Positions 14,233-51,105 of a DNA stretch of 51,105 nucleotides are shown here, one piece after another. The DNA comes from Octopus bimaculoides (Eukaryota): NCBI RefSeq assembly GCF_001194135.2, contig NC_068982.1, positions 184,068,557 to 184,119,661 of the forward strand. Reading direction: 5' to 3'. The notes below the pieces were generated by a model. It saw only the letters and a program-made list of their open reading frames with translations, did not search any database and had not been told where the DNA came from. The position numbers and the translations under genes were made by a program. Each line of letters starts with the position of its first letter. Position 1 is the stretch's first letter.

Positions 14233-14346
14233 NNNNNNNNNNNNNNNNNNNNNNNNNNNNNNNNNNNNNNNNNNNNNNNNNNNNNNNNNNNNNNNNNNNN
14301 NNNNNNNNNNNNNNNNNNNNNNNNNNNNNNNNNNNNNNNNNNNNNC

Positions 14347-14765: not shown

Positions 14766-15117
14766 ATACATATGCTTGAAATGAAGAATAGATAGACAAC
14801 CGACAACTGATGAAGGGTCCTTTCTGTGTGTTTACTAGTCCTGTTTTGCATTTATCTACTCGATTTCCCCTCGTTTGTTTACGTATTTCATGTTATTTGC
14901 ACCGCTGGTGACATCCTGTNNNNNNNNNNNNNNNNNNNNNNNNNNNNNNNNNNNNNNNNNNNNNNNNNNNNNNNNNNNNNNNNNNNNNNNNNNNNNNNNN
15001 NNNNNNNNNNNNNNNNNNNNNNNNNNTATATATTATATATTATATACATATATACATAATATATTATTTATTATATACAATATATATTATATATTATTAA
15101 TATATATTATTTATTAA

Positions 15118-18307: not shown

Positions 18308-20339
18308 NNNNNNNNNNNNNNNNNNNNNNNNNNNNNNNNNNNNNNNNNNNNNNNNNNNNNNNNNNNNNNNNNNNNNNNNNNNNNNNNNNNNNNNNNNNNN
18401 NNNNNNNNNNNNNNNNNTAACTGGATCCTAATCCACCAAGGGAAGGTATGTCAGAAGAAAGTAATTCAACAACGCGGGTTGATGAACCGTAAGACGTGTG
18501 GCCAGAACCTCCTGGAAAATAACCATAGCGAGGGACATTCCACAGTTGGATTAGAACAGTCACAAACAGTGAAAGAAGACATGCACCCAACACCAGAGCT
18601 AAAGACACCTCCGAAAGGAGGGGCCCCGCCACGTCAAAACGGTAGAGGAGTAGGGGCCGAAACCGGACGTGGTTCCACCTGATGATGTCTTGAGCTAACT
18701 GGATCCTATAAAGGAGCTGTTGTGGTAGCAGACCACGAAACATGGTTGAAATTCCTCTGTGAGTCGAATCAGTTGGCTGTACCCACTTTCCTATAAATAT
18801 ATAACCATAAATAAATGTAGAATTCCTTTATTATCAGAAGATGGTAGTTGGTAGATTAGATAAAGTGGTGGACAATACTAATGGTACAGCACCGTCTTTC
18901 CGAATACTGATGGCTCGGAACCTCTTATAATCCACAGTAATTTACGAGTAGGAACTTCAATTTCCTGCGGCCACCAGACTAGTTTACTGGTACCTTAAGC
19001 AGATTAGTACCTTGTACAGCAAAATACTAATAAACTTGTATTATTTATATTAGTGTACAGGTACCTGTATTTCATTTAATAATTTATGTAAATTTAATGT
19101 TTGTTTAATTTAAGCCGGCAGAACCGTTAGCACGCCGGATGAAATGTTTAGTGGCATTCCGTCCGTCTTCATGTTCTGAGTTTAAATTCCGGGGTCGATG
19201 ACATAAGTACTAGTCGAGCACCAGGGGTCGATGTAATAAACTTACCCCCTCCCTCTTCCCCGAGATTCCTGGCCTTGTGCCAAAATATGAAACCAATAAT
19301 TGTTTAATTTAGAGTGTGGCCACCCTTGGTTCGGAAAAAGCAGTAATCTGGAATGGCGTTAGAACCAAAGGTTTCGGGAAATTGATGTTGTACTAGTATT
19401 TGTAGTGTTCAGCTATCGAAATTTGCATTCTGAGTTCAGATACCGTTACGGTTGGCATTACTTCTTATTCTCCTGCGGGGAAACTACTGTAGTAACGCCG
19501 TGCGCATGCGTAGTCTCACGCATGCGTGGAATTAAACAAGCAAGCTTTCCCGCTTAATTCTATCTCTTTCTTGCTGGCCAGCAATAGAGCATGGACGTGT
19601 CAAGCAGTGTCTCCAACACCCAACTCTGGAGACAGTCTCTTTACGTGTTTAGCTGTCACTCTCCATCTTTCGGACTTACACTCGACAGCTCGCTCACATC
19701 TACATACCCACGTCCCAACAACTATGCTCACACACAACAGAAGCTGTAACAACAAGAGCTAAAGATGTATATATTTACCACCTGAATAAATGTTGTTTAA
19801 GTTGATAGTCCGGAGTTCAGCGTTCCGTTATATTNNNNNNNNNNNNNNNNNNNNNNNNNNNNNNNNNNNNNNNNNNNNNNNNNNNNNNNNNNNNNNNNNN
19901 NNNNNNNNNNNNNNNNNNNNNNNNNNNNNNNNNNNNNNNNNNNNNNNNNNNNNNNNNNNNNNNNNNNNNNNNNNNNNNNNNNNNNNNNNNNNNNNNNNNN
20001 NNNNNNNNNNNNNNNNNNNNNNNNNNNNNNNNNNNNNNNNNNNNNNNNNNNNNNNNNNNNNNNNNNNNNNNNNNNNNNNNNNNNNNNNNNNNNNNNNNNN
20101 NNNNNNNNNNNNNNNNNNNNNNNNNNNNNNNNNNNNNNNNNNNNNNNNNNNNNNNNNNNNNNNNNNNNNNNNNNNNNNNNNNNNNNNNNNNNNNNNNNNN
20201 NNNNNNNNNNNNNNNNNNNNNNNNNNNNNNNNNNNNNNNNNNNNNNNNNNNNNNNNNNNNNNNNNNNNNNNNNNNNNNNNNNNNNNNNNNNNNNNNNNNN
20301 NNNNNNNNNNNNNNNNATACATTAAGTGCCGACTACATA

Positions 20340-25038: not shown

Positions 25039-25790
25039 NNNNNNNNNNNNNNNNNNNNNNNNNNNNNNNNNNNNNNNNNNNNNNNNNNNNNNNNNNNNNN
25101 NNNNNNNNNNNNNNNNNNNNNNNNNNNNNNNNNNNNNNNNNNNNNNNNNNNNNNNNNNNNNNNNNNNNNNNNNNNNNNNNNNNNNNNNNNNNNNNNNNNN
25201 NNNNNNNNNNNNNNNNNNNNNNNNNNNNNNNNNNNNNNNNNNNNNNNNNNNNNNNNNNNNNNNNNNNNNNNNNNNNNNNNNNNNNNNNNNNNNNNNNNNN
25301 NNNNNNNNNNNNNNNNNNNNNNNNNNNNNNNNNNNNNNNNNNNNNNNNNNNNNNNNNNNNNNNNNNNNNNNNNNNNNNNNNNNNNNNNNNNNNNNNNNNN
25401 NNNNNNNNNNNNNNNNNNNNNNNNNNNNNNNNNNNNNNNNNNNNNNNNNNNNNNNNNNNNNNNNNNNNNNNNNNNNNNNNNNNNNNNNNNNNNNNNNNNN
25501 NNNNNNNNNNNNNNNNNNNNNNNNNNNNNNNNNNNNNNNNNNNNNNNNNNNNNNNNNNNNNNNNNNNNNNNNNNNNNNNNNNNNNNNNNNNNNNNNNNNN
25601 NNNNNNNNNNNNNNNNNNNGCTGAATCCTTTTTTCTCCTATGGATCCCTTTGATTTCTACTTTACTCTACTGGACATATACAGCCATTCGATATTAAAAA
25701 AAAAATCCTACTGTTGTCTTCTATCGCCTCGGGCCGACCATAGTGAGTTTGGTAGACGGAAACTGAAAGAAGCCCGTCGTATATAATATA

Positions 25791-25825
<35 letters not shown>

Positions 25826-26075
25826 TGTAGGGATAAGCAAGTTAGCTCAATATACATAAAGTTTTACTATATTAATACATGAAATACAAAATGTGTGTGT
25901 GTGTATCTGTGTTTGTCCCTCGTCTGGTATTTACGTCTTTGTAACTTAGCGGTTCAGCAAAAGACACCAATAGAATAAGTAGTAGGCTTTCAAAATAATT
26001 CGCTTAAAAATTCTTCAAGGCAGTGCCCCAGCATGGCCACAGTGTAACGACTGAAACAAATGAAACATAAACGAT
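24840..26075 (+). mobile_element. SINE family A spanning an assembly gap (possibly two copies)
   Basis: Head and core at 24840-25000, (TA)n and gap, then ctcgggccgacc...tail at 25730-26075. Confidence 0.65.
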
Positions 26076-26281
26076 AAATTCCTTAACAACAAAATCTTAT
26101 ATGGGCCCCGGTTGCAAACCACTCGTTTTAAGTCCTTCGGAGTCGACAAAGATTTATTGCAATGATTCAATTTTTTTAAAAGTTCGCCCTTACTACTACT
26201 ACTACTACTACTACTATCATCATCAATGTCATTCATAAACAATTTTGCCTGTTGTGCGATTACACCTCTTTGTGTGTGTAT

Positions 26282-26319
<38 letters not shown>

Positions 26320-26639
26320 TGTAATCTACTACAACACCGAATCGTGTGTAATCCACGCTTATTCTATCCAATTACCCATGTTATTTCTAGAAATGTCTCC
26401 CCTTCCTCCTTCTCCCTTATATATTCAGCGAATATCCCTCATACTTCATCTCCTTTTTCATATATTCCCCTCTCTCCTGCTTTACTTTTCGATGATCCCC
26501 TCTTTTTCTCGTTTGCGTTCGCTTCTACCTCTACGTGCTAGAAATAGCAGTCAAATCTCCCTCAAATGGGATGTTCATAGCTCGACTGCTTTTTGACCAT
26601 AGATCTGCTCAATTAGAGCTGACCTGTGGCTAAACAACA

Positions 26640-27490
26640 ATATTCACATGTCTCTCCTGTTTTTACCTTTTTCTTTTTCACCTGTTCTCTCTCTCCGTAA
26701 CATCCCTTTTCTCACTGTCTCTCTCTCTCTCTACCTCACTCCCTCTCTCTTGCATCCTCTTCCAATATTTTGCCGTTGCATTATTACTCTTTTACTTTCA
26801 CTTACACTTTCTCTTTCTCTCTCTTCTTTTCATCCTCCCTTCCTCCCTTTACACGCAATACTTCTCTGGTCTGCAGTGTTGCTATGGCATCTGACTTCTC
26901 TCCCCACCTCAGCTGTTTTGGCTTCCTCCCATTCTCTCTTTAACTGCTTCTGTTCATTTACTCACTCTTTGTATTTTTATACTCTCTCGCTTCCTATTTC
27001 TCACTCTCACTCCCCCTCTACCTCTTTACTAACTGCTCTTTTATCCCCCTCTCTTATTCCGTAAATACCCTTTCTTTTTCTCCTACCCTATTCTCTTTCT
27101 TTGCTCTCTGTATCTCTCTCCTTCTGTATCATCTACCTTTCTCATTCCTCATTTACTCACTCTATCTAGTCGCATATATCTATCCCTTTCTATCTCTCAT
27201 TGTCGTCTTATTTCCCTCTCTATCTTCATCTACTTTTTCTCTGTCTCTCTCTCTCTCTCATTCATTTTTTTCCCACCCTCTCTGATTTTTCTCCTACTTT
27301 ATTCCTCTTTTCTTTTATCCCCCTCACTATACAAACTCTCTCTTTCACTTCACCTTCACGCTCACTTTCTATATCTCTCTTTTTTGCCTTTTACACTCCC
27401 TTGCCTCTCTCTCTCTCTCATATTACTTTATAGTATCTCCTCCCACTCTAGCTCTCTGTCTGCCTCCTCCTCCTCTCTTTTATCTCTCCC
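26640..27490. repeat. Long pyrimidine-rich (CT) low-complexity tract
   Basis: About 850 bp dominated by C/T on the + strand. Confidence 0.85.
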
Positions 27491-30187
27491 CACTATTCAT
27501 TCTCGTACATCAGCAGGAGCTGCAATGAACGACAGACGCCGATGATTCGAATGAGGAGGTAAGACAGTTTGTATCTGTTGTCTTCTTAACTGTTGCTGAC
27601 ATTATCACAATCATCATCATTAACATCGTCACCATTACGGGTATTCCTCATCATCATCACCGTCATCGTATGTATTGTACATCAGTCTGTGTTACTACGG
27701 CAGCTACCGTCGCCACCACCATCACTACCACCCCGCTACTATCAATCCACCTCCACCACCACCACCACATTGATTATCATTTCTACTACTGCCGCTACAC
27801 TATTTACCATCAATCACTGTTAGACATGAAATGACATTAGTACCAGTAATACAGTACGCTACATCTTGTAACTGAAGTCTCACTCCGCTCTCGGCTTAAA
27901 CCTGTTGGTCATTTTACCCTCTAAAATCATTCATTACCGTTACAATTACCCCCACCTCCACCGTCGTTATCATCGATATCATCACCACCACCACCGCCAC
28001 CACCACCATCATCATCAGCATCATTAACATTATCATTCATATCATCATCGTTGTCATCCTCAATATATTTTATGAAATCCCTAATTTATATCAATATGAA
28101 GAAGAAGAAGAAAAAAAAACGACAAATTAAATATAAATATTCTCATTATTGGCAGAATTGGTAGAGCGCCTGATAAATATCTTGCGGTACTTAAACGAGT
28201 CCCTTTACCGTGCGAGTTCAAGTGGTATCGAAGTCGACTTTCCCTTTCGATATCAATAAAATAAGTATCAATCTGAATCGATGTGATCGACTACAACCCT
28301 CCCCCCCTCTCCTTCCTTCCAAAGGTTACGGTTTTGTCAGAAATCATTACTGGAATTGGCAGAATCGTTAGAGCGTCGAAGAAAATATTTTGCGTTACTT
28401 AGTTTCGCTTTCCGGGGTTGATAAAATCAAGTAATAAAAACTACAGTCAATGTAATCGACAAGTCCCCTTTCCTCAAAATTGAAACTTAAGTGGGGTAGA
28501 TGGCAAAATTGGTACGACATAGGACCAAATACATAGTGGCATTTAGTTACGTACTTTTAAGGTCTTAAGTTCAAATCCCGTTGGTGACAGGTTGATGTCT
28601 TTCTTCTCGCCCGTCACTTTATTGTTATATCATGTTAAAGGTCCAGAAATCATGTTCAGTCATGTCCTAAGCTTATGCAGTAGTGGGGTTGTAAACAATG
28701 ATTGTCGTTTTAGGCCCGTGTCAGCTCTAATCGAGCAGACCTATGGATCAGTCAAACGAGCCGTGACCACCCTGTCTTTTTCCTGCGCTAGGAAGTAAGG
28801 ATCACATTAACGAACGTGTGCCCTTTTCATAAACGGTAGAGTGTTATTTGAGGGAGATTTGATTGCTATCTGTATCGAGTGGAGTTAACCATTTAGAGGT
28901 TGATCTCATACTCTGCCAGTGTGTGTCGCAGTGGGGGTTTAGTGCTGGTTGTCAAGGGTTATTATGACAAACCTACTACTCTGGCATCAGTAACTGGAAT
29001 ATATTGCTTTTGTGGCAGTTAATTTGGAAAATAATGAAGAATTTCAGAAAATAACTGCAATTATTAACTGGTGTTTAGAACATAAGTTAACATGTAATTT
29101 TGATGGAACGTTTTAGCTTAGATCACTTAAAAACGAAGTTTGTATCTGGAACCCGTGCAGGGCAGTTCGTATAAGAACGTTTAAGCCATCCCTGTACATA
29201 ATCGTTTTACAACTTCAAACTGTCATAGCGCCTTCTGGGTGGATATTATTAGACTTGAAAACAAATTACGGCCAGAATATACCATGAGACTGCAAGAATG
29301 TGCAACTCTCCTGAGAATTCAATCCCTACTTCCAGGTATTGGAGTCATCTTTAATCTACAGCTTCATCACCACCGCCACCATCAAAATATGTATCCTTAC
29401 ATCAAGACTTGTGACCACTATCAATTTGACAGTCACCGGACTAGGTGCTTCGCTGCATGTAAGATAACCAAACTGCAGTGCCGGATTTGCCATATCGCCG
29501 GCTTTCATTCCGCTATGGTCTATATAATAAATACCACTGATATCATCAGATTAAATTCTGTCAATAATAACCCCCTTCTCGGTATCATAATGCACTGCAT
29601 TCTAACTTTCCCTGTTTTTGTTGCCCCTGGGATATATAAAGTAATTCCCCACCTTACACCTGTATACGTGCGAGTTTGTTAGTTCATTCCTAAATGTATG
29701 TATATGTGCGAGTGTGGTTAAATTTGTATATGTATTAAAATACAAGAGTATTCACACCTGTATATTTGTGTACGCTTACAAATATGTGTATATGTGTGTG
29801 TGTATGTTATCTGCATGTCTGGTTAAGATTTTACTAATGTACATATATATGTGTGAGTGTGGTTATAATTTTATGTATCAATATGCGTATGTATGGGTGC
29901 GGCTACACCTGCATATTATACGCAAATATGTGCGAGTATGGCTATACCTCTCACCTTTCTGCGTGTTCGAATGTCATTACACTTGTGCGTTCATGCGCAA
30001 ATTTACTTACACTTGTATATGTGTATATGGTTACGTCTGTGTTGTGTCTAGTTTTGAGTGTGTGGTGTAATGTGTCTGTTCATGTTTTCTGTGGTATATG
30101 TATTATATATGTGTATTACTCGTATATATATATATATATATGTATATATATACGAGTAATACACATATATAATACATATACCACAGA

Positions 30188-30265
<78 letters not shown>

Positions 30266-30300
30266 NNNNNNNNNNCGTGTATGTATGTATGTATGTATGC

Positions 30301-30347
<47 letters not shown>

Positions 30348-30756
30348 CATCATATCATTTAACGTCCGTTTTTCCATGCTTGCATGGGTCAGATGGAATT
30401 TGTTGAGGCATATTTTCTATGGCAGGATGCTCTTCCTGTTGCTAATCCTTAACTGCTTCCAAGCAAGGTGGTATTCTCCCATAGCTAAACATGTTCTTCG
30501 CGGAAGACTGGAAACAAACAGCTTTGCTTATTCGATGATGATGATCGTTTACAACCATCACGTAATGTCTGCAGAAGGATACACACGCACGCACACACAC
30601 ACTCTCTCTCTTCCTTCCTCCCTCTCTCTCTCCCTCCCCTTCTCTCCTCTTTCTCACACACACGCGCGCACACATATTCTTTCAGTTTTCATCTGTCAGA
30701 TCTACTCACAAAGCTTCGGTCAGCCCGAGTCTGTAGTAGAAGACGCTTGCCCAAAG

Positions 30757-32024: not shown

Positions 32025-32140
32025 NNNNNNNNNNNNNNNNNNNNNNNNNNNNNNNNNNNNNNNNNNNNNNNNNNNNNNNNNNNNNNNNNNNNNNNNNNNN
32101 NNNNNNNNNNNNNNNNNNNNNNNNNNNNNNNNNNNNNNNN

Positions 32141-35200: not shown

Positions 35201-35479
35201 GCTCTTAAAATGCAATGTTTGAGTGCATGTGTATATACCCCTACTCCCAAACTGCAACTGAACCTTTAGATCCTTTGCCAAAAGAATATCCGACATTTAT
35301 ATACATCATCATCATCATCGTCGTCGTTGTTTAACATCTGCTTTCCATGCTGGCATGGGTTGGATGGTTTGACTAGGAACTGGCAAGATGGGAGGCTGTA
35401 TCAGGCTCTGATTTGATCTGGCAAGGTTTCTACAGCTGGATGCCCTTCCTAACGCCAACCACTCTGAGAATGTAGTGGT

Positions 35480-36032
35480 TGGCACTCCGTCGGTTACGAC
35501 GACGAGGGTTCCAGTTGATCCGATCAATGGAACAGCCTGCTCGTGAAATTAACGTGCAAGTGGCTGAGCACTCCACAGACACGTGTACCCTTAACGTAGT
35601 TCTCCGGGATATTCAGCGTGACACAGTGTGACAAGGCTGACCCTTTGAATTACAGGCACAACAGAAACAGGAAGTAAGTGTGAGAGAAAGTTGTGGTGAA
35701 AGAGTGCAGCAGGGTTCGNNNNNNNNNNGCAAGTGGCTGAGCACTCCACAGACACGTGTACCCTTAACGTAGTTCTCCGGGATATTCAGCGTGACACAGT
35801 GTGACAAGGCTGACCCTTTGAATTACAGGCACAACAGAAACAGGAAGTAAGTGTGAGAGAAAGTTGTGGTGAAAGAGTGCAGCAGGGTTCGCCACCATCC
35901 CCTGCCGGAGCCTTGTGGAGCTTTAGGTGTTTTCGCTCAATAAACACTCACAAAGCCCGGTCTGGGAATTGAAACCGCGATCTTATGACCGCGAGTCCGC
36001 TGCCCTAACCACTGGGCCATTGCACCTCCACT
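35480..36032 (-). mobile_element. tRNA-derived SINE family C (internal duplication across a 10-N gap is probably artefactual)
   Basis: Near-identical to 24160-24510. tRNA-like head at the right end. Confidence 0.85.
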
Positions 36033-36939
36033 AGAATGTAGTATACATTAAAATATGTGTGTGTGTGAGAGGCAACTTATAGAAAATGGACATCCAAGAA
36101 TACATGGGGAAGAGATGACAGTGGGTTGCAATGATTGGTGACAGACAGTACTGAAGAACTGCACCCCCCTCACCTCTACAGGCAAAGCAAATTGAACATT
36201 AAAATAGTAGTTGTGATGGAGACTGAGTACATTTGCATTTGGGTCTCTTGTTCAACGTATCCTTGTTGAGTCTACACCTGCTGTCTGACCCATTTTTTAA
36301 TACCTTCTCACCTCTGCATCATTCATCTCTATAACCCAGCTTCTGTTTATTTATCCTCTCTTCTATTCTCTATTCTAATCTGCTTATATTGAGTATACAA
36401 GGATGGCAATTGAGAAAAATACCGAATGAAACAAACAAAAAATAGATATGTATACATACATTTGTGTATGTGTGTGTGTGTGTGTGTATCATCATGATCA
36501 TTTAGCATCCGCTTTCCATACTGGCATGGGTTAGATGGCTTGACTGGAACTGGTAAGCCGGAGAGCTGCACCAGGCTCCAGTCTGATTTTGCATGGTTTC
36601 TATGGAAGATATTTGTAGACGAGAGATTAATCTTAAAACTAGGAAGTTCAATACTTGACAGTGGTCTGTGGTTTCATGCTGGACTGGGGAACCTCAGACT
36701 ATTCCTTTTGCTGGATTCAGTAATTGGATTGTAACAGTCCTAAAGCACTATCTTCAAGAGTTAAGTCAATTATATCAACACTAATATCTATCTACTTAGT
36801 TTGCTATCAATTTTATTGATCTATTTGTTGAACTGCTAAAAAATTACAGACCATGAGGGAGGACACACCATAATGGCAACAATGATGCATAGATGTACCC
36901 CACCCCATATACACTAACACACCTCATTTCCCCATCCTC

Positions 36940-37025: not shown

Positions 37026-37056
37026 TACATATGTATATATATATATATGTATGTAT

Positions 37057-37202
37057 CTCTGAGTGGTTGGCGTTAGGAAGGGCATCCAGCTGTAGAAACT
37101 CTGCCAAATTTAGATTGGAGCCTGGTGTTGCCATCCGGTTTCACCAGTCCTCAGTCAAATCGTCCAACCCATGCTAGCATGGAAAGCGGACGTTAAACGA
37201 TG

Positions 37203-37208
<6 letters not shown>
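37057..37208 (+). mobile_element. (GAT)n-tailed short retroposon (LINE-tail-like family D)
   Basis: gagtggttggcgttaggaagggcatccagctgtagaaact...gaaagcggacgttaaacgatgatgatg. Other copies at ~30350-30520 (-), 35308-35470 (-), 36488-36600 (-), 39449-39660 (+), 42608-43045 (-) and 45436-45700 (+). Confidence 0.8.
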
Positions 37209-37341: not shown

Positions 37342-38622
37342 TACAAACAACGACTTCTCTCTTTCATTGTTATTGTTATTGTTGTTATTTTTTTTTTACA
37401 TCTTTTCTTTAGTCATATTTGTCTTGCACAAAGGACAGTAATCAATATTATTGTTAGAAATCAATACATATTCTATGACCAATCTTACTTTGGTGACGTC
37501 GGTGATGAGAGGTGTGATTCTATAACATTCTGTCCGTACGTTTATAGACTGCTCCCTAGAGCGATTTATTCAACTATATTATAACAGGCTAAGTGACTAC
37601 TTCAAAACTTCCTTGATGACTCTCTCACACACACACTCATTAACAATAACATATTAACAAGCTGTTTTACTGCTTTCTTCCTTCTTTTATCACCTGCTGC
37701 TGTTACAGTGTCTTGCTGAAACTTCTCCAAGTTTTCTGACCATTAAACGGTTGAGAGAACTCTTTGCCCCGCTATAGAATTTCAATCAATCATATGATGT
37801 CTCTTCCTGTAATTTGAACTCGGTACTTCATGCTAACAAAAGTAATCATATACTGGATTACTTCACAATCTTTTTATTAATTCAACATTTCACAATGTCT
37901 CTCTACCTGAGGCGTTTCGAGTCATTAATACTTTAACGATGAAAGTAAACAAAGTTTTTTTTGTTTTTTTTTTTAGAAGCGTTGAGATGTATTGTAAGCT
38001 ACAGAAATAAATTCATTTCTCAAACGCGTGATAATGCTATAAATAGCATGATCAGGACAAATTATCCATATATTGCAGAAAAATACGTTACTGGCCAGCC
38101 ATGAGACTTAAACTCACATCTCTGTGATTACATGTCAAGTGTTTTACCATTAAACCAAATTGCCCAGCAACAAATTCTTCAGCAATTTTAGAACTTATAA
38201 ATTTAGCTTCATAAGACGCTATGAGTTCGAGTCTCATGGCTGGCCAGTAACGTATTTTTCTGCATTATATGGATGATTTATTCTGATCACGCGTTTGAGA
38301 AATAAATTTATTTCTGTATTAATAATACTTTAGATGAAATCAGAGTTTCTTTGAGAAAATCTGTTGCCCAAAACATTAGTTGTTCTCTCTCCCCACAACA
38401 TGTCAACTTGTATGTTGCCAACACGGACTACCACCACAATCATACCCATACCAACTTCACCTTGACTCTTGGCTATGAATGAGTATGTTGTTTTCATTCA
38501 GTGGGGATAAATTTGTCACTGGGAAGGACAGGTAACCTTATAATGAATAATTTATTAAATAACATGTATAAACTAAGTTATTTTCAATAAATAAAAAAAA
38601 CTCTATTATTTTTCCTTTTCAG

Positions 38623-38802
38623 TTGCAGCCTGGTTTTATCATTCACCATTCCAAAAATCTAATCTAGAAAAAATCACCTGTAAATTTACCAAATGTCTCA
38701 AGTACCTGGAATGAACGTGTATGATGGAAAACCATCAAGGCCATATTTTAAAGACACAGATTCAAAATATGTTCGGCTTGCTAAGGAACGTGGAGTGAAA
38801 GG
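38623..38802 (+). CDS. C7orf57: C7orf57-like protein, first recognisable coding exon (frame-disrupted in this sequence; continuous ORF only from ATG 38721/38724)
   Basis: Acceptor tttccttttcag (38622) and donor G|GTTACA (38803). Blocks AWFYHSP, SQVPG and KDTDSKYVRLAKERG match recalled human DWYYHVP, SQIPG and KETDSEYVKLAKQGG, but SQVPG is in a different frame and a TGA lies at 38712-38714. Confidence 0.85.
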
Positions 38803-39797
38803 TTACAAGTTCAATCCATTTTTCAACTACCTATTCTAATATTCTATGCTGTTTTCCCTTTAATTTTTCTCATTCTGTTATTGTCACACATTGTCTTCAC
38901 CTTGGTTCTCTAATTCTGATAATGTCATGCACTACCTTCACTTTGGTTCCCTGGTTTTGATAATATTATACACTGCTTCCTCCATGGTCCCCTGGTTTTG
39001 ATAGTATTATGGACTGTCTTAAGGCAAATGAGCTGGCAGAACTGTTAGCATACTGGACAAAATACCAGCATTTCGTTTGTCTTTATATTCTGTGTTCAAA
39101 TTCTGCCAACCCTATGGAGTTGTTAAAACAAGTCCCAGTTCATCACTGGGGTTGATATAATCAACTTACCCACTCCTCTGAAATTGCTGGCTTTGTGCTA
39201 AAATTTGAAACGTATATCACATACTGTCTTCACCTTTGTTTCTTGATTCTGATAATATCTTCTCCTTGGTTCTCTAATTGTGATAATGTCACAGAAAGTC
39301 CCCACCTTGGTTCTCTGATTTTGATAAAGGTTTTGAAGTCTACACTAGAACAATGTATTTATGTTGTGTTTTTAGTTGGATTTTATTATCATTTCACATC
39401 TGGTTTCCATGCTGGCAGGCGTTAGACCTGGATTCTATTATTTTATTTGTTGCCAGTACCGTGTGACTGGCCCTTGTGCCGGTGGCACGTAAAAGCACCC
39501 ACTACACTCTCTGAGTGGTTGGCGTTAGGAAGGGCATCCAGCTGTAGAAACTCTGATCAGATTGGAGCCTGGTGCAGCCTTCTGGCTTGCTAGTCCTCAG
39601 TCAGATCGTCCAACCCATGCTAGCATGGAAAGCGGACGTTAAACGATGATGATGATGATGACCATGTTAGAGTCCTTTATTACATTTCTTTTAATAAATT
39701 GAAACTGTATTGTAAGATCCCTTGGGTTGTAGATTCAATTTATTACCAAGTTTGAAACTGTCACCTGGTCTTTGGATGCTTTTCGCAGAGTCTACAT

Positions 39798-41931: not shown

Positions 41932-42046
41932 ATTTGTTAAAACATGAAGAAACTGCTGGGAAACCAAATGCTGTACCTTATAATCGAGTAAATTGGTTTT
42001 ATTTGGAGGATAATGCTGCAGAAGATGCCCAGAAGAGGAAGAGTGT
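41932..42046 (+). CDS. C7orf57: C7orf57-like protein, exon 2
   Basis: ttttag|AT...GT|gtaagt. The phase-1 join gives DLLKHEETAGKPNAVPYNRVNWFYLEDNAAEDAQKRKS (recalled human DLLKHF...VAYSLPDWY). Confidence 0.9.
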
Positions 42047-44242
42047 GTAAGTGCTTTATCGTTGTTGTTAACTCTGTCTGTGAGAACACCTACAACCATG
42101 GGTGTTCCAGTGATGGCCATCCTATCTTTTTATGCTTCAAGGACATTGTCTGATGTGTCCTTGTTTATGTAACACATAAGGTGTAGTGTGTAATTTGAGG
42201 GAGGTTTGACTGCCATTTATAGCAGTTCAACAAGTGAGTATATAGAGTCTCTCTTGGCTGTGTTTGTTGTTTTTATTGAGGAAGGACAAATTTGTGACTA
42301 AGATGAAGGGTGAGTAGCTCATTACAGATTATCAGATTTACGTAGACACTAGCTCATTATAGTAACAGTGATGTTGCTACAGAATGGCCACACATCTAAA
42401 CGGATGCATTAATTAATATATACTTTACTGATTAATTTGTTTTCTAGGCTTCATTTCTGTTGAGTTAGAAAACAGAGATGTCTTCAAGCTTTGTATTGTT
42501 GGAACACAACTTTGTCTTCGTAAACTGGTTGAAAGGAATATACACAGCTGTAGACTGATGTAATCTTTAGCCAAGCCCTTGGAAGGATTTGAACTGAAAG
42601 CTAGTGAATCATCATCATCATCATCATTGTTTAACGTCCGCTTTTCATGCTAGCATGGGTTGGACGATTTGACTGAGGACTGGTGGACCAGGTGGCTACA
42701 CCAGGCTCCAATCTGATTTGGCAGAGTTTCTACAGCTGGATGCCCTTCCTAACTCCAACCACTTTGAGAGTGTAGTGGGTGCTTTTACGTGCCACTGGAA
42801 CGAAGGCCAGTCAGGTGGGTACTGGCAACAGCCACGCTCAAATGATGTTTTTTATATGCCACCTGCACAGGAGCCAGTCCAGCGGTACTGGCAACGATCT
42901 CGCTCGAATGTCTTTTCATGTGCCACTGGCACAAGTGGCAGTAAGGCGACGTTGGTCACGATCACACTCAAATGGTGCTATATACATGCCACCGGCACGA
43001 AAGCCAGACAGCTGGTGCTCTGGCAACGATCACGCTCGGACAGTGCATCAATTGTGTATCTTCATAAGGTGACCAGGTAGCAGAATTGTTAGCACACTGG
43101 GTAAAATGCTTAGTGGCATTTTGTCTGTCTTTATGTTCTGAGTTCAAATTCTGCCAAGGTGACTCTGCTTTCATCCTTTCGGGATCAGTAAAATAAGTAC
43201 CAGTTGAACATTGGGGTCAATGTAATTGACTTACCCTTTCCCTCAAAATTGCTGACCTTGTGCCAGCATATGAAACTAATAATGTATCTTCATGTGATTC
43301 ACTGATTTGTACCACTAAGGGTCGCATATCATTTCTAATAGAGACACCTTACAGCAAAAAAACCCCTGTTCTTTGTAGCAGTAGGGTGATATCATTTCAT
43401 TTCAACAAACTATGTCTGTACCAGTTACATAACAGAATTAGTTCAAATGATTTTCTCTTATTCTTAAAAGATGTCATATTATGATAGTGGAGATGTTTTG
43501 TAGTATTTGACTCAATGTGTCTGAAGAGTACTTATGGCATTGTGCAATGACAATATGTTCAGCAATTTGAACAGCTCTCAGTGACAAAATTTGGTATTAG
43601 TCCTTTCAAGACATGTAGATTGCTGTATATTTTTTTTTTCCATTCTTGTCTCAGAGAATAGTATCTTAAAAGTGCTGACCTCTCCCAATTGCTGCATAGA
43701 GTCAATGCTTGTAATAAAAGAAAGTTGGATTATCTCCAGTTTAGTTGTGTGCTTTATAAGTCAACTATAATCAGGCTTGGATGTCCAGCTCAATGAGAAT
43801 AACTCTTCCACAGAGCCAACTTCTGTTTTTGCTTCTTTTTTTTTCCAAATTTTCTCCAAAACTATCCTGCCAGTCAACAGGACACTGTTTCCATCTTAGT
43901 AAAATATGCAACATTGTTGTTATTATTTGACCAAGATGGTTTATTTGTTGTAACTAATAATTATATTCACCGGGGGATGTGCCCTTCTTATCACTAATTA
44001 TTCATCTAAAGTAGGAAGTGACCAAGCTTATTTCTGCTCACTCAGGCACATTGTAACAAGCAGAGTTAAGTGACTTGCTCAGAAGCTCAACACTATGACC
44101 CTAGTACAATTTGAACTTATGACCGTGTGATTAGTATTGTAGCACCCTAACCTTGTAGTTACTACATCTTGTATACATAAATGTTATGCATTTTTTATTA
44201 TCTTTTACTTAATTTTTATGTATTATGTATTATCTATTGAAG

Positions 44243-44623
44243 CAATTGGACGTTTGGTGCCCCAGAATATATGAGTAATGTTTCCTCACCCAAGTCAGAG
44301 TCTAGTGAGACCAAAGAAGACTATGAGGTTTCAAGCCCCAAGGAGTGTGAAGTCAAACCTGTGAAAACTGAACCAGCTGGGCTCAATAGAAAACTTGAAA
44401 GCTATGATCACCCATTTATTCACGGTTATTACTCTCCAACTGAGCCTAAGGAGAACAGAAATGAAGAGAGAGAAGAAGAAGAGGAAAGTGTAAGTGATCA
44501 GTTGTCAGAGAAGAATGATTTTGAAAATGTGATGGCTGAACCATTACCAGTGACACAGCAGATCAAGAAAGCCACAGCACATCCACAGCAATGGAAAAAC
44601 CCAATCACACAGACTGAAATAAG
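44243..44623 (+). CDS. C7orf57: C7orf57-like protein, exon 3
   Basis: The phase-2 join gives VNWTFGAPEYMSNVSSPK...TQTEI (recalled human MPDYM). Open 381-nt frame, donor AG|GTTTGT. Confidence 0.85.
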
Positions 44624-45100: not shown

Positions 45101-46116
45101 TTCATTCATACATTTGTTACATCAAACTGTGTCAAGTGCCTGTAACCAGGTAGAGATGTCTTGCATTAAAGGAGATACATGGCTACCTTGGTAGGAGAGA
45201 AAATGGAGAAAATCTGATGGTGGGTTTGTACACTCAAGTTACTGGGTGGTGTATATAAGTGAAGTGGAACCAAGGGTTGGCTAAAGTGTATATATGTATT
45301 GGGAGTATTTGTGTATTCTTTCTGAGTGTCTCCTGTTCACCTGATATATGTTGGAGTGTTACCAAGTTAATTGCCCAGATCATTTAGATCCCCATTACTT
45401 TGTGTGTGTGTGTGTGTATCAATGATGATGGTGATGATTGGCTCCTGTGCAGGTGGCACGTAAAATACACCATTTTGAGCGTGGCCGTTGCCAGTACCTC
45501 CTGACTGGCCTCCGTGCCAGTGGCACGTAAAAGCACCCACTACACTCTCAGAGTGGTTGGCGTTAGGAAGGGCATTCAGATGTAGAAACTCTGCCAGATC
45601 AGATTGGAGCCTGGTGTAGTCATCTGGTTCACCAGTCCTCAGTCAAATCGTCCAACCCATGCTAGCATGGAAAGCGGACGTTAAACGATGATGATGATGA
45701 GAGAGAGTGGGAGAAAGACAAACTCACCTAGGCTTTTGAGATAAAGATAGCATGTATTTCATCAACTGTACCACACTCCCTCAATGAATTGTGTACTCGA
45801 GTCAAGAAGTTTGCCTTACAAGGAATTGCTGCCAAATCTTCTGAATTCATGACTGTCACCTTAAGGGACATACATGTTAGATAATGTAGCTCTAGGTTTC
45901 ACTAAAATACAAGATAGTGATGATGGCATTTGATTACAGAACAAGAACTGCAAGCTATTGAGTTACTGACCATAATGTTCTGACAAACCGACTTAGAATT
46001 TTTTGCCACATTATAACTGTCTCGACTTGTTGCATGTCCTTTAGTGTAGACATTTTGAAAAGCTATTTTTACAGACCTAATTGTCCATAACTAAGTAATC
46101 TTCTTTTCACTTTCAG

Positions 46117-46273
46117 TGGTGATGCTCCTATGAAGGGAAGTGGAAAGAAATGTTGTCCAAGGGAAAATGCTTGTACATCAATGTCAAAACTCTTGTCATT
46201 TGGCTATGCACAAGATTGGCATTCCAAGAAGGATGGATCAGGAGAATCGAACAGCCCCAATGAGAACCCATAA
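46117..46273 (+). CDS. C7orf57: C7orf57-like protein, last coding exon
   Basis: Strong acceptor ttcttttcactttcag. The phase-2 join gives SGDAPMKG...TSMSKLLSFGYAQDWH...ENP* (recalled human TNFSKLISNGYKDEW). The spliced ORF from 38721 is 735 nt (244 aa plus stop). Confidence 0.9.
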
Positions 46274-49030: not shown

Positions 49031-49405
49031 CTAATGAGTTAGTATGAATTTATCAATGTGTGGGCACCTAATAAAAAGTTTGGTCCTGTTATTTACACAG
49101 TTTCCAGAGTTTTATTACTTACCCCATTATGTACATGTTCTCCACTCAAGAAAGTTAATGTTTCGTTGCCTCATTGGTTTATAGTCTGCACCATTCAAAA
49201 ATTCTCTGTCACCTAATTTCATAATCCACGTTGAGTTCTATTACTTCCCAAAAAGCAGTTAGCCAGTGTTGTGAAAGTTCACTTGTCAAGATATCTACAG
49301 GACGAGTTATGCTTTAAAAGCCTTTTCTTGAATTTACCTTCAATTATGCCTATGTAATTCTTCTTTCCAACTAGCTTATATGATGTATTTGAGATAACTT
49401 CAATG
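49031..49405 (-). pseudogene. Penelope-like element GIY-YIG endonuclease fragment
   Basis: Minus strand KNYIGIIEGKFKKRLLKHNSS...FWEVIELNVDYEIR...VNNRTKLFIRCPHIDKFIL* matches the Y.G.TE..FK.R...H.SSF / IW.LK....Y.I.W / LN.RSEL..KCRH..KF.L pattern. Frameshifts and stops present. Confidence 0.75.
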
Positions 49406-51105
49406 CCTGACCATGAAACATGAGTAGCAAATTTTTACATCATAGGTACTGTATAAAATTCATACCTGTATTGAGTTCTCTCTACTTGTTGAATGTTCAC
49501 TCAGACACGAGTGTGCGTGTGTGTGTGTGTGTGTGTGTGTACACATACACACTGAAGTGAACCACAATTAAGTGAATTGAATTAGTACTCAGTACTATTA
49601 GGTTGAATGAAATAATATTTATTCAAAGCTAAAGCTGTGAGTCATTACTTAATAACTTAGAATTTTTTGATTTTGTTGCTGAGTCACCCAACAATATGAA
49701 TATTGTTTGTATAATGTTCATAAATTTATAAATATTGCATAGTATTGGATATCATGCATATATGACATTCATTATATTATTACATAAATATATATTTATT
49801 TATCATGACGTACATTACATGACATATACTGCATAATGTATTAAATAGCATATATTACACAACATACATCTGAAGATGCATGGCAGGTATATTCCTCACA
49901 CCACATTACACAGTAAATTGCTTGGAGCAAATTGCACAACATTCATTGTATGATTAGATTATGTATATGTCCTGTCAGTAATACCACAACACATTATAAA
50001 ATATAAACTTCACAATAAAGCACTTTGCAACACACATTACATGCTGCATCTTGGGCAAATATCTTCTACTATATTCCAGGACCAACCTAAGCATTGTGAG
50101 TGGGTTTGATAAATAGGCTAAAAGAATCCTGTCATACATAATAATATAATATACATACTTATGTGTTGTGTGTTTGTTGCCTTGTCTTGACATGGCATGA
50201 TAGTTGTAAGCAGGAGTCACTGTCATACAAGAGGTGTCGTTTATTTTTAATCTTCTATCATGGGGAAATATTACTTTGCTTGGAAACAGGTGAACAGGAA
50301 GAAGAGCATCCAATTGTAGCAAAATCAACTGTAATGAATGCCCTCCGACTTATGTAAGCATCTTGGAAAAGTGGACATTAAACATGATAATGATGAGAAT
50401 TACAAAAAGTACTTCACAACGCACGTTGCACAAAGTGCTTTCTACACATGTATTACACAGCAAATATTACACATCACACATTGCAAAATATGTATTTCAT
50501 GCATCTGTTATGCATATGTGTGTGTGTATGTGTATGTGAGTATGCATATATATGTGTGTGTATATATATATGTGTGTGTGTGTGTGTATACGTGTGCATG
50601 TGTGTATCTATATTTATATACACACACACTTATATAATCATTGTTTTAATATAGACTTTTCTCTGCTTGCATGGGTCATATGAGACTGTTGAGGAAGATT
50701 CTCTATGGCCGTATGCTGTTCTTGTTGCTAACGCTCACCTGTTTCCAAGCAAGTAATAATTACCCCAGTCTTTCAAACAATAAACAGGCCAGCCATGCTT
50801 TTGTGGTGAACTGCAAATAAATGATGGCTTTTACATGAACCAGGACACTTGGTTTATGACCAATGCACACATATTTGGACAAAGGGAATATGAACACACA
50901 CTCACACACACACATACATGTATGTACATGTACACTCACACATATACACACGACAGGTTTCTTCAAGTTTTTACTGCTATAGTATAGTACACCAGCCCAA
51001 CAGTGTTCACTCTGGAAATGAACCCCCAATTTATGAGGTTCTGATGCACACTTCATAACTACACACCCAAGTCAAGCCTATATATATATATATATATATA
51101 TATAT

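Follow-up and report, generated by a model that had tools for sequence, protein, structure and literature searches.

Proteins of the C7orf57 family are uncharacterised, and in mammals they are tied to motile ciliated cells (bioRxiv 10.1101/2025.03.18.643967; 10.1101/2023.03.31.535034). The human protein and the corresponding Pfam family (PF17662, DUF5524) run collinear with an octopus relative through the motifs SQ[IV]PG, DTDSxYVRLAKxGGR.DLL, WFYLEDN, PEYM and MSKLLSxGY, whereas the octopus protein is without the N-terminal segment of approximately 30 residues that carries GW[FYM]YH, and its C-terminal half is shorter and has diverged. In RefSeq, the octopus protein is represented by XP_014790517.1, which has the same 253 residues and the same start codon (ATG 38693) as the gene model presented here, but the record is silent on the coding relic that lies out of frame in the leader.

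The short isoform of decapod cephalopods (P0003 and P0008 with 322 aa, P0014 with 290 aa, from the cluster that includes Acanthosepion pharaonis proteins) shares with the octopus both the MSQ[IV]PG start and the downstream protein. In decapods, however, it exists beside a long isoform and the WFYH leader stands in frame, whereas the long option is destroyed in octopods. With antizyme-type +1 frameshifting, the locus has only one feature in common, namely a conserved protein segment that is found in two frames; in the octopus gene, neither a shift site nor an offset is conserved and an upstream initiator is lacking, and sister species have a stop in place of W. Genes are known to evolve by losing an N-terminal isoform to frameshift or nonsense mutation while a pre-existing downstream start is kept, and the present locus is a new and tidy case.

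We have analysed a stretch of 51,105 nucleotides of Octopus bimaculoides DNA (the window). An earlier reading of this stretch (the original prediction) described a conserved C7orf57-like exon that is broken across reading frames at three short A-runs while the rest of the gene is intact. Our analysis points to a different situation: positions 38629-38801 are very probably the first coding exon of the intact gene LOC106883890, whose first 64 nt, ahead of the start codon, are a relic of a long isoform, such that the octopods sampled have kept the short form only.

Results

An intact four-exon gene

The gene model (Table 1) has four exons with canonical AG/GT splice sites in phases 1, 2 and 2, and an open reading frame of 762 nt, that is, 253 codons and a stop. 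Exons 2-4 were found by tblastn with a human sequence, which served as a lead only, and were then checked by their splice phases and by identity to RefSeq. In an exact-sequence look-up, the 253-aa translation equalled XP_014790517.1 (uncharacterized protein LOC106883890, O. bimaculoides) over all residues. The public annotation has the same start and the same exons as the present model, and the gene is intact and correctly annotated. Exons 2-4 are free of lesions, as had been predicted, and the assignment to a C7orf57-like family was borne out by a match to Pfam DUF5524 above the gathering score (score 38.9 bits, cutoff 35.6 bits; E = 8.9e-10), in which protein residues 14-86 lie on profile positions 58-128. 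A profile search of 1.84 billion representatives gave 229 relatives at E <= 0.001, and a sequence search of the PDB with the family profile returned no solved structure with detectable sequence similarity.

Homologues retrieved with the 253-aa protein as query included P0001 from O. vulgaris and O. sinensis (251 aa, start MSQVPG, 90% identity to O. bimaculoides), P0002 from Argonauta hians (239 aa, start MSQVPK, 57% identity), P0003 from RNA-seq assemblies, which groups with cuttlefish sequences (322 aa, start MSQIPG), P0004, which clusters with proteins of the cuttlefish Acanthosepion pharaonis (321 aa, N-terminus MPARINQEESAWFYHTPFESSKSDKPTPKPLMSQIPG), and P0005 from the freshwater mussel Sinanodonta woodiana (358 aa, N-terminus MAVNKNINEAGWFYHAP...PAMSQIPG). 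In the alignment, the core motifs SQ[IV]PG, DTDSKYVRLAK.GG/R..DLL, NWFYLEDNA, PEYM and MSKLLS.GY are collinear, and their columns are invariant in all five of the five mollusc proteins. Over their whole length, the four exons are 90-95% identical in nucleotide sequence to those of O. sinensis and O. vulgaris, and the coding part of exon 1 matches that of O. vulgaris without gaps at 95.4%. Exon structure and start codon agree with those of the annotated octopod genes (LOC106883890 / LOC115228949). By the Nei-Gojobori method, the divergence of O. bimaculoides from O. vulgaris amounts to dN 0.048 and dS 0.22, with a dN/dS ratio of 0.22. The short protein thus shows the mark of purifying selection, which excludes a null allele. 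None of the Logan transcript contigs carried a protein identical to that of either species. In Argonauta hians, the next gene called downstream of the orthologue (L012:24255-24386) encodes an Integrator subunit 5 protein (INTS5_N/INTS5_C).

Table 1. Features of the window, numbered from its first letter
Feature	Positions	Strand	Remarks
3' end of upstream intron	38609..38628	+	pyrimidine tract with tandem acceptors cag 38620-38622 and cag 38626-38628, of which the latter is conserved
5' leader of first coding exon, out-of-frame relic of long-isoform N-terminus	38629..38692	+	W codon 38631-38633; WFYHSPFQKSNLEK in frame of 38622
A6 run in leader	38668..38673	+	O. sinensis and O. vulgaris 1 nt shorter at the run or directly beside it (alignment)
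Coding part of exon 1	38693..38801	+	MSQVPGMNVYDGKPSRPYFKDTDSKYVRLAKERGVK and first base of Asp codon (phase 1); donor AAG/GTTACA at 38801/38802
TGA closing relic (WFYH) frame	38712..38714	+	19 nt downstream of start of real ATG
Exon 2	41932..42046	+	(D)LLKHEETAGKPNAVPYNRVNWFYLEDNAAEDAQKRKS; acceptor ttttag/, donor GT/GTAAGT; ends phase 2
Exon 3	44243..44623	+	(V)NWTFGAPEYM...NPITQTEI; acceptor ttgaag/, donor AAG/GTTTGT; ends phase 2
Exon 4	46117..46273	+	(S)GDAPMKGSGKKCC...MSKLLSFGYAQDWHSKKDGSGESNSPNENP; stop TAA 46271-46273
SINE-like repeat copy	30346-30389	-	
SINE-like repeat copy	35303-35481	-	
SINE-like repeat copy	36488-36587	-	
SINE-like repeat copy	37056-37208	+	
SINE-like repeat copy	39449-39667	+	
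SINE-like repeat copy	42612-42830	-	
SINE-like repeat copy	45487-45700	+	
N run	4430-4528		
N run	8039-8551		
N run	10314-10586		
N run	14233-14345		
N run	14920-15026		
N run	18308-18417		
N run	19835-20316		
N run	25039-25619		
N run	30266-30275		
N run	32025-32140		
N run	35719-35728		

Reading frames of the start exon

Translation of the three forward frames of 38620-38812 shows a single unbroken frame from ATG 38693 to the splice donor; the frame of 38621 reads ...L*IYQ MSQVPGMNVYDGKPSRPYFKDTDSKYVRLAKERGVKGYK without interruption. On the 5' side of this ATG, its own frame has stops at TAG 38657-38659 and TAA 38681-38683. Hence, the main open reading frame cannot extend upstream, whatever 5' exon adjoins it. 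The frame of 38622, in contrast, reads VAAWFYHSPFQKSNLEKITCKFTKCLKYLE before it ends in a stop, and contains the WFYH motif. The observation that WFYHSP begins at TGG 38631 in a frame closed by TGA 38712-38714, and that ATG 38693 opens MSQVPG in a separate frame, is thus confirmed. The view that the exon is broken across frames holds insofar as these two frames differ, but the coding exon itself is one intact frame.

The remaining discrepancies come down to a single letter. One A had been overcounted in TTTTAAAGAC, and this gave rise to a false third lesion, a false stop and a false shift site. The lysine of KDTDS is AAA 38750-38752, followed by GAC, such that the supposed third A-run at 38750-38753 consists of AAA and then G, and its shortening, far from repairing anything, would break the intact reading frame. 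Likewise, KDTDSKYVRLAK begins at 38750 rather than at 38751, and it lies in the MSQVPG frame rather than in the WFYHSP frame. The stop that had been assigned to the MSQVPG frame at 38783-38785 is AAG, the lysine of LAK; the adjacent TAA 38782-38784 sits in the third frame. KDTDSKYVRLAKERGVK is read in the frame of MSQVPG, which continues in phase across the splice junction to exon 2.

The original prediction had furthermore envisaged a stepwise erosion of the N-terminus, with a frameshift at 38750, a new start at ATG 38724 giving MENHQGHIL and a demotion of the MSQVPG frame to an overlapping uORF, or alternatively a recent null allele. This ATG is indeed present in the context described (A at -3, G at +4). 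However, its frame, MENHQGHILKTQIQNMFGLLRNVE, is a dead end that meets TGA 38796-38798 before the splice donor, while the MSQVPG frame is the main open reading frame and yields a protein identical to XP_014790517.1. With reading frame and splice sites intact, identity to RefSeq and the dN/dS value given above, neither version retains any real credibility. What stands of the proposal is erosion upstream of the start: in place of three lesions within the coding exon, the sequence has no more than two surplus nucleotides, which both precede the ATG. The working start is the conserved methionine of MSQVPG, and the methionine of MSQ[VI]PG is common to the cephalopod proteins and the freshwater mussel relative. 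Initiation at this codon would yield a peptide (M)SQVPGMNVYDGK.

A relic of the family N-terminus in the leader

WFYHSPFQKS (38631-38660) is the N-terminal motif of the family, in the right position and order but in the wrong frame. The two A-runs upstream of the coding sequence are as had been described, six A at 38668-38673 and three at 38691-38693, the third A of the latter being the A of the ATG. In silico deletion of one base from each of them gives WFYHSPFQKSNLEKSPVNLPMSQVPG, and with the N-terminus restored in this way, the match to DUF5524 gains in score, from 38.9 to 50.8 bits, and reaches back to profile position 19 instead of 58. Among 90 full-length family representatives, 55 carry W[FYM]YH at 19-23 residues before SQ[IV]P, including a primate C7orf57 sequence (P0083). 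The collinearity of WFYH together with this family-wide spacing argues that the match is not due to chance. In the 253-aa octopus protein, the N-terminal W[FYM]YH motif is missing, and it exists as out-of-frame DNA only.

The leader 38629-38692 contains no ATG. Of the two tandem acceptors at its 5' border, Argonauta has kept only the second AG (TTAATTGCAG/CCTGG), and in decapod transcripts the 5' exons join directly to CCTGG. Both observations argue for an exon start at 38629 rather than at 38623. Since the middle of the leader has diverged too far from decapods for alignment at the level of single bases, the extra nucleotides are not assignable to the A-runs, though the net lengths are firm.

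The leader in other octopods and in decapods

We compared assemblies of O. sinensis, O. vulgaris and Argonauta hians, such that the octopods sampled comprise three lineages. In three decapod transcripts, W codon and ATG lie 60 nt apart and in frame. In O. bimaculoides, where the W codon is TGG, the distance is 62 nt (net +2 nt). It is 61 nt (net +1 nt) in O. sinensis and O. vulgaris, whose assemblies are identical across the leader and have TGA in place of TGG, and the difference between 62 and 61 nt is explained by the 1-nt length change at or beside the A6 run. In Argonauta, the distance is 71 nt (net +11 nt), and the YHxP part has decayed (AAWFKLEQLL...). Alignment with octopod and decapod orthologues, a check that had been suggested along with the prediction, thus shows a relic that is shared and a frame state that differs from lineage to lineage. 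Judging by these sequences, the out-of-frame leader is real and present in every octopod examined, though the way in which it is out of frame differs; it does not stem from an error of assembly, nor does it mark a recoding site or a null allele.

The TGA that replaces the relic Trp codon lies at L001:2940-2942 in O. sinensis and at L002:2940-2942 in O. vulgaris (homologous to window positions 38631-38633). In principle, A-to-I editing could turn it into a Trp codon, but since these species would remain 1 nt out of frame in the leader, the long form cannot be brought back by editing.

The comparison bears on the suggestion that the long reading frame is truly continuous and is interrupted only by homopolymer indels in the assembly of O. 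bimaculoides. For this speaks that one extra nucleotide lies in or beside the A6 run, which is one base shorter in O. vulgaris, and that the window, with its eleven N runs, comes from a gapped scaffold assembly. Yet two separate errors would be required, and the leader is likewise out of frame in the assemblies of three further species, in each case differently, with an additional TGA in O. vulgaris and O. sinensis. Furthermore, the RefSeq and O. vulgaris annotations both begin with MSQVPG, and the third indel at 38750 is nonexistent. We therefore consider an artefact very unlikely.

Programmed ribosomal frameshifting that joins the WFYH and MSQVPG frames, or acts at TTT-AAA-AGA as had been proposed, deserves even less credit. 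A-rich runs do lie between the two frames, but TTT-AAA-AGA is a misreading of TTT AAA GAC. To connect the frames, two +1 shifts would be needed, and one -1 shift at the A6 run would hit TAA 38681-38683. No canonical X XXY YYZ heptamer is found in the zero frame, the offset is 62, 61 or 71 nt depending on the species, the W codon of O. vulgaris is a stop, and no initiator was found for the upstream frame.

Decapod isoforms and the history of the leader

The clusters of P0003 and P0004 each hold long and short proteins (353, 350, 321 and 319 aa versus 322 and 290 aa). P0004, P0007 and P0009-11 are long forms and P0003, P0008 and P0014 are short forms, and both kinds come from the same species clusters. 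The long form reads M..AR.N..(E/A)AW(F/Y)YH...PLMSQIPG, and the short form starts at the internal methionine. At the level of transcript contigs, all decapod variants are identical in content from CCTGGTATTATCAT onward and differ upstream of it. In one short variant, AWYYH is directly preceded by an in-frame stop that stems from another 5' exon, which ends in ...TCTAAG; a second short variant is spliced from the donor ...TTTTTAC/GTAAGT, and the long variant reads past that donor into a segment with ATGACCGCTCGAAATAATCCGGATGAGGCAG, which is the source of its start codon. A comparison of two decapod transcripts (L013:150-232 and L007:190-314) shows that this alternative donor, AC/GTAAGT, lies inside the 5' exon and sets the isoform in this decapod, and that reading through it adds a 31-nt segment bearing the ATG.

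The existence of long and short transcripts in decapods suggests that the ancestral cephalopod gene already had two N-termini, the methionine of MSQ[IV]PG being the second start. The 64 nt before the octopus ATG would once have encoded the WFYHxP segment of a long isoform that began on an upstream exon. Octopods would then have lost the long option by frameshift or nonsense mutation, once or several times; the leader would have been free to drift, and the short isoform alone would have been kept. As in decapods, the octopus leader is presumably transcribed from an upstream exon, though probably with no ATG-bearing upstream exon left. When every ATG with its following 10 codons was scored by BLOSUM against decapod and bivalve N-termini, no convincing candidate for the ancestral ATG-bearing exon emerged in the window, and when 10 kb from upstream of the Argonauta gene were compared with the window by blastn, the matches were to repeats only.

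These searches also bear on the idea that the upstream exon of O. bimaculoides keeps the ancestral ATG, and that an overlapping uORF or micropeptide, M...AAWFYHSPFQKSNLEKITCKFTKCLKYLE followed by a stop, represses the main open reading frame or is co-expressed with it. No stop interrupts the W frame between the acceptor and its TGA beyond the main ATG, the W codon is intact in this species, and the decapod ATG sits on an upstream exon segment, all of which speaks for such a uORF. Against it stand the failure of motif scoring and of Argonauta conservation to reveal a candidate ATG exon upstream in the window, the TGA at W and the other offset in O. vulgaris and O. sinensis, and the loss of the motif in Argonauta, such that no such reading frame is conserved. 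On balance, we regard a uORF as improbable, and prefer the reading that the leader is a relic and now probably acts as untranslated sequence in the octopods sampled.

For sequence that is presumed to be non-coding, the WFYHSPF relic is strikingly well kept in Octopus as compared to Argonauta. The Octopus species differ at about 4-5 of the 64 leader positions, a sample too small for a test of neutrality. The good preservation may reflect a recent loss in Octopus that was independent of Argonauta, or residual constraint, be it on splicing near the acceptor or on translational control.

Surroundings of the gene

Within the window, a SINE-like repeat of approximately 210 bp occurs in at least seven copies in both orientations, 80-90% identical to each other, with one copy each in introns 1, 2 and 3; its translation gives recurring strings of the kind ...EGHPAVETL...SPQSDRPTHASMESGR. 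TA, TG and CA microsatellites are abundant across the whole window, and the 2-kb bin 26001-28000 has a GC skew of -0.50 and an AT skew of -0.29, probably reflecting a C/T-rich simple-sequence tract.

Some 3 kb past the stop of the gene, at 49154-49414, tblastn gave three weak matches (SLPHWFI, HHSK and SMPDH) that are collinear with human SLPDWYIHHSK...SMPDY and unlike octopus exon 2. With E-values of 26-68 and mixed frames with stops, they are in all probability due to chance, though they might conceivably stem from a decayed gene fragment.

Discussion

The locus matters mainly as a correction, since it makes no case for recoding, for a null allele or for an assembly error. At the same time, it provides a small, clean example of gene decay at the level of an isoform, with a coding fossil that can still be read in the 5' leader.

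In the octopods sampled, GWFYHxP, the most conserved N-terminal motif of this metazoan-wide family of motile-cilia proteins, would be lost at the isoform level, by frameshift or nonsense decay of a segment whose use in decapods is regulated by alternative 5' splicing. There is a slim chance that its relic keeps a non-coding role, as an element of translational control or as an overlapping uORF. Should O. bimaculoides still translate the relic reading frame, beginning at an ATG further upstream, the gene would be split into a micropeptide and a truncated protein. The loss of the long form hints that C7orf57-family proteins can, in at least one setting, do without the WFYH segment, and this could guide the dissection of their domains.
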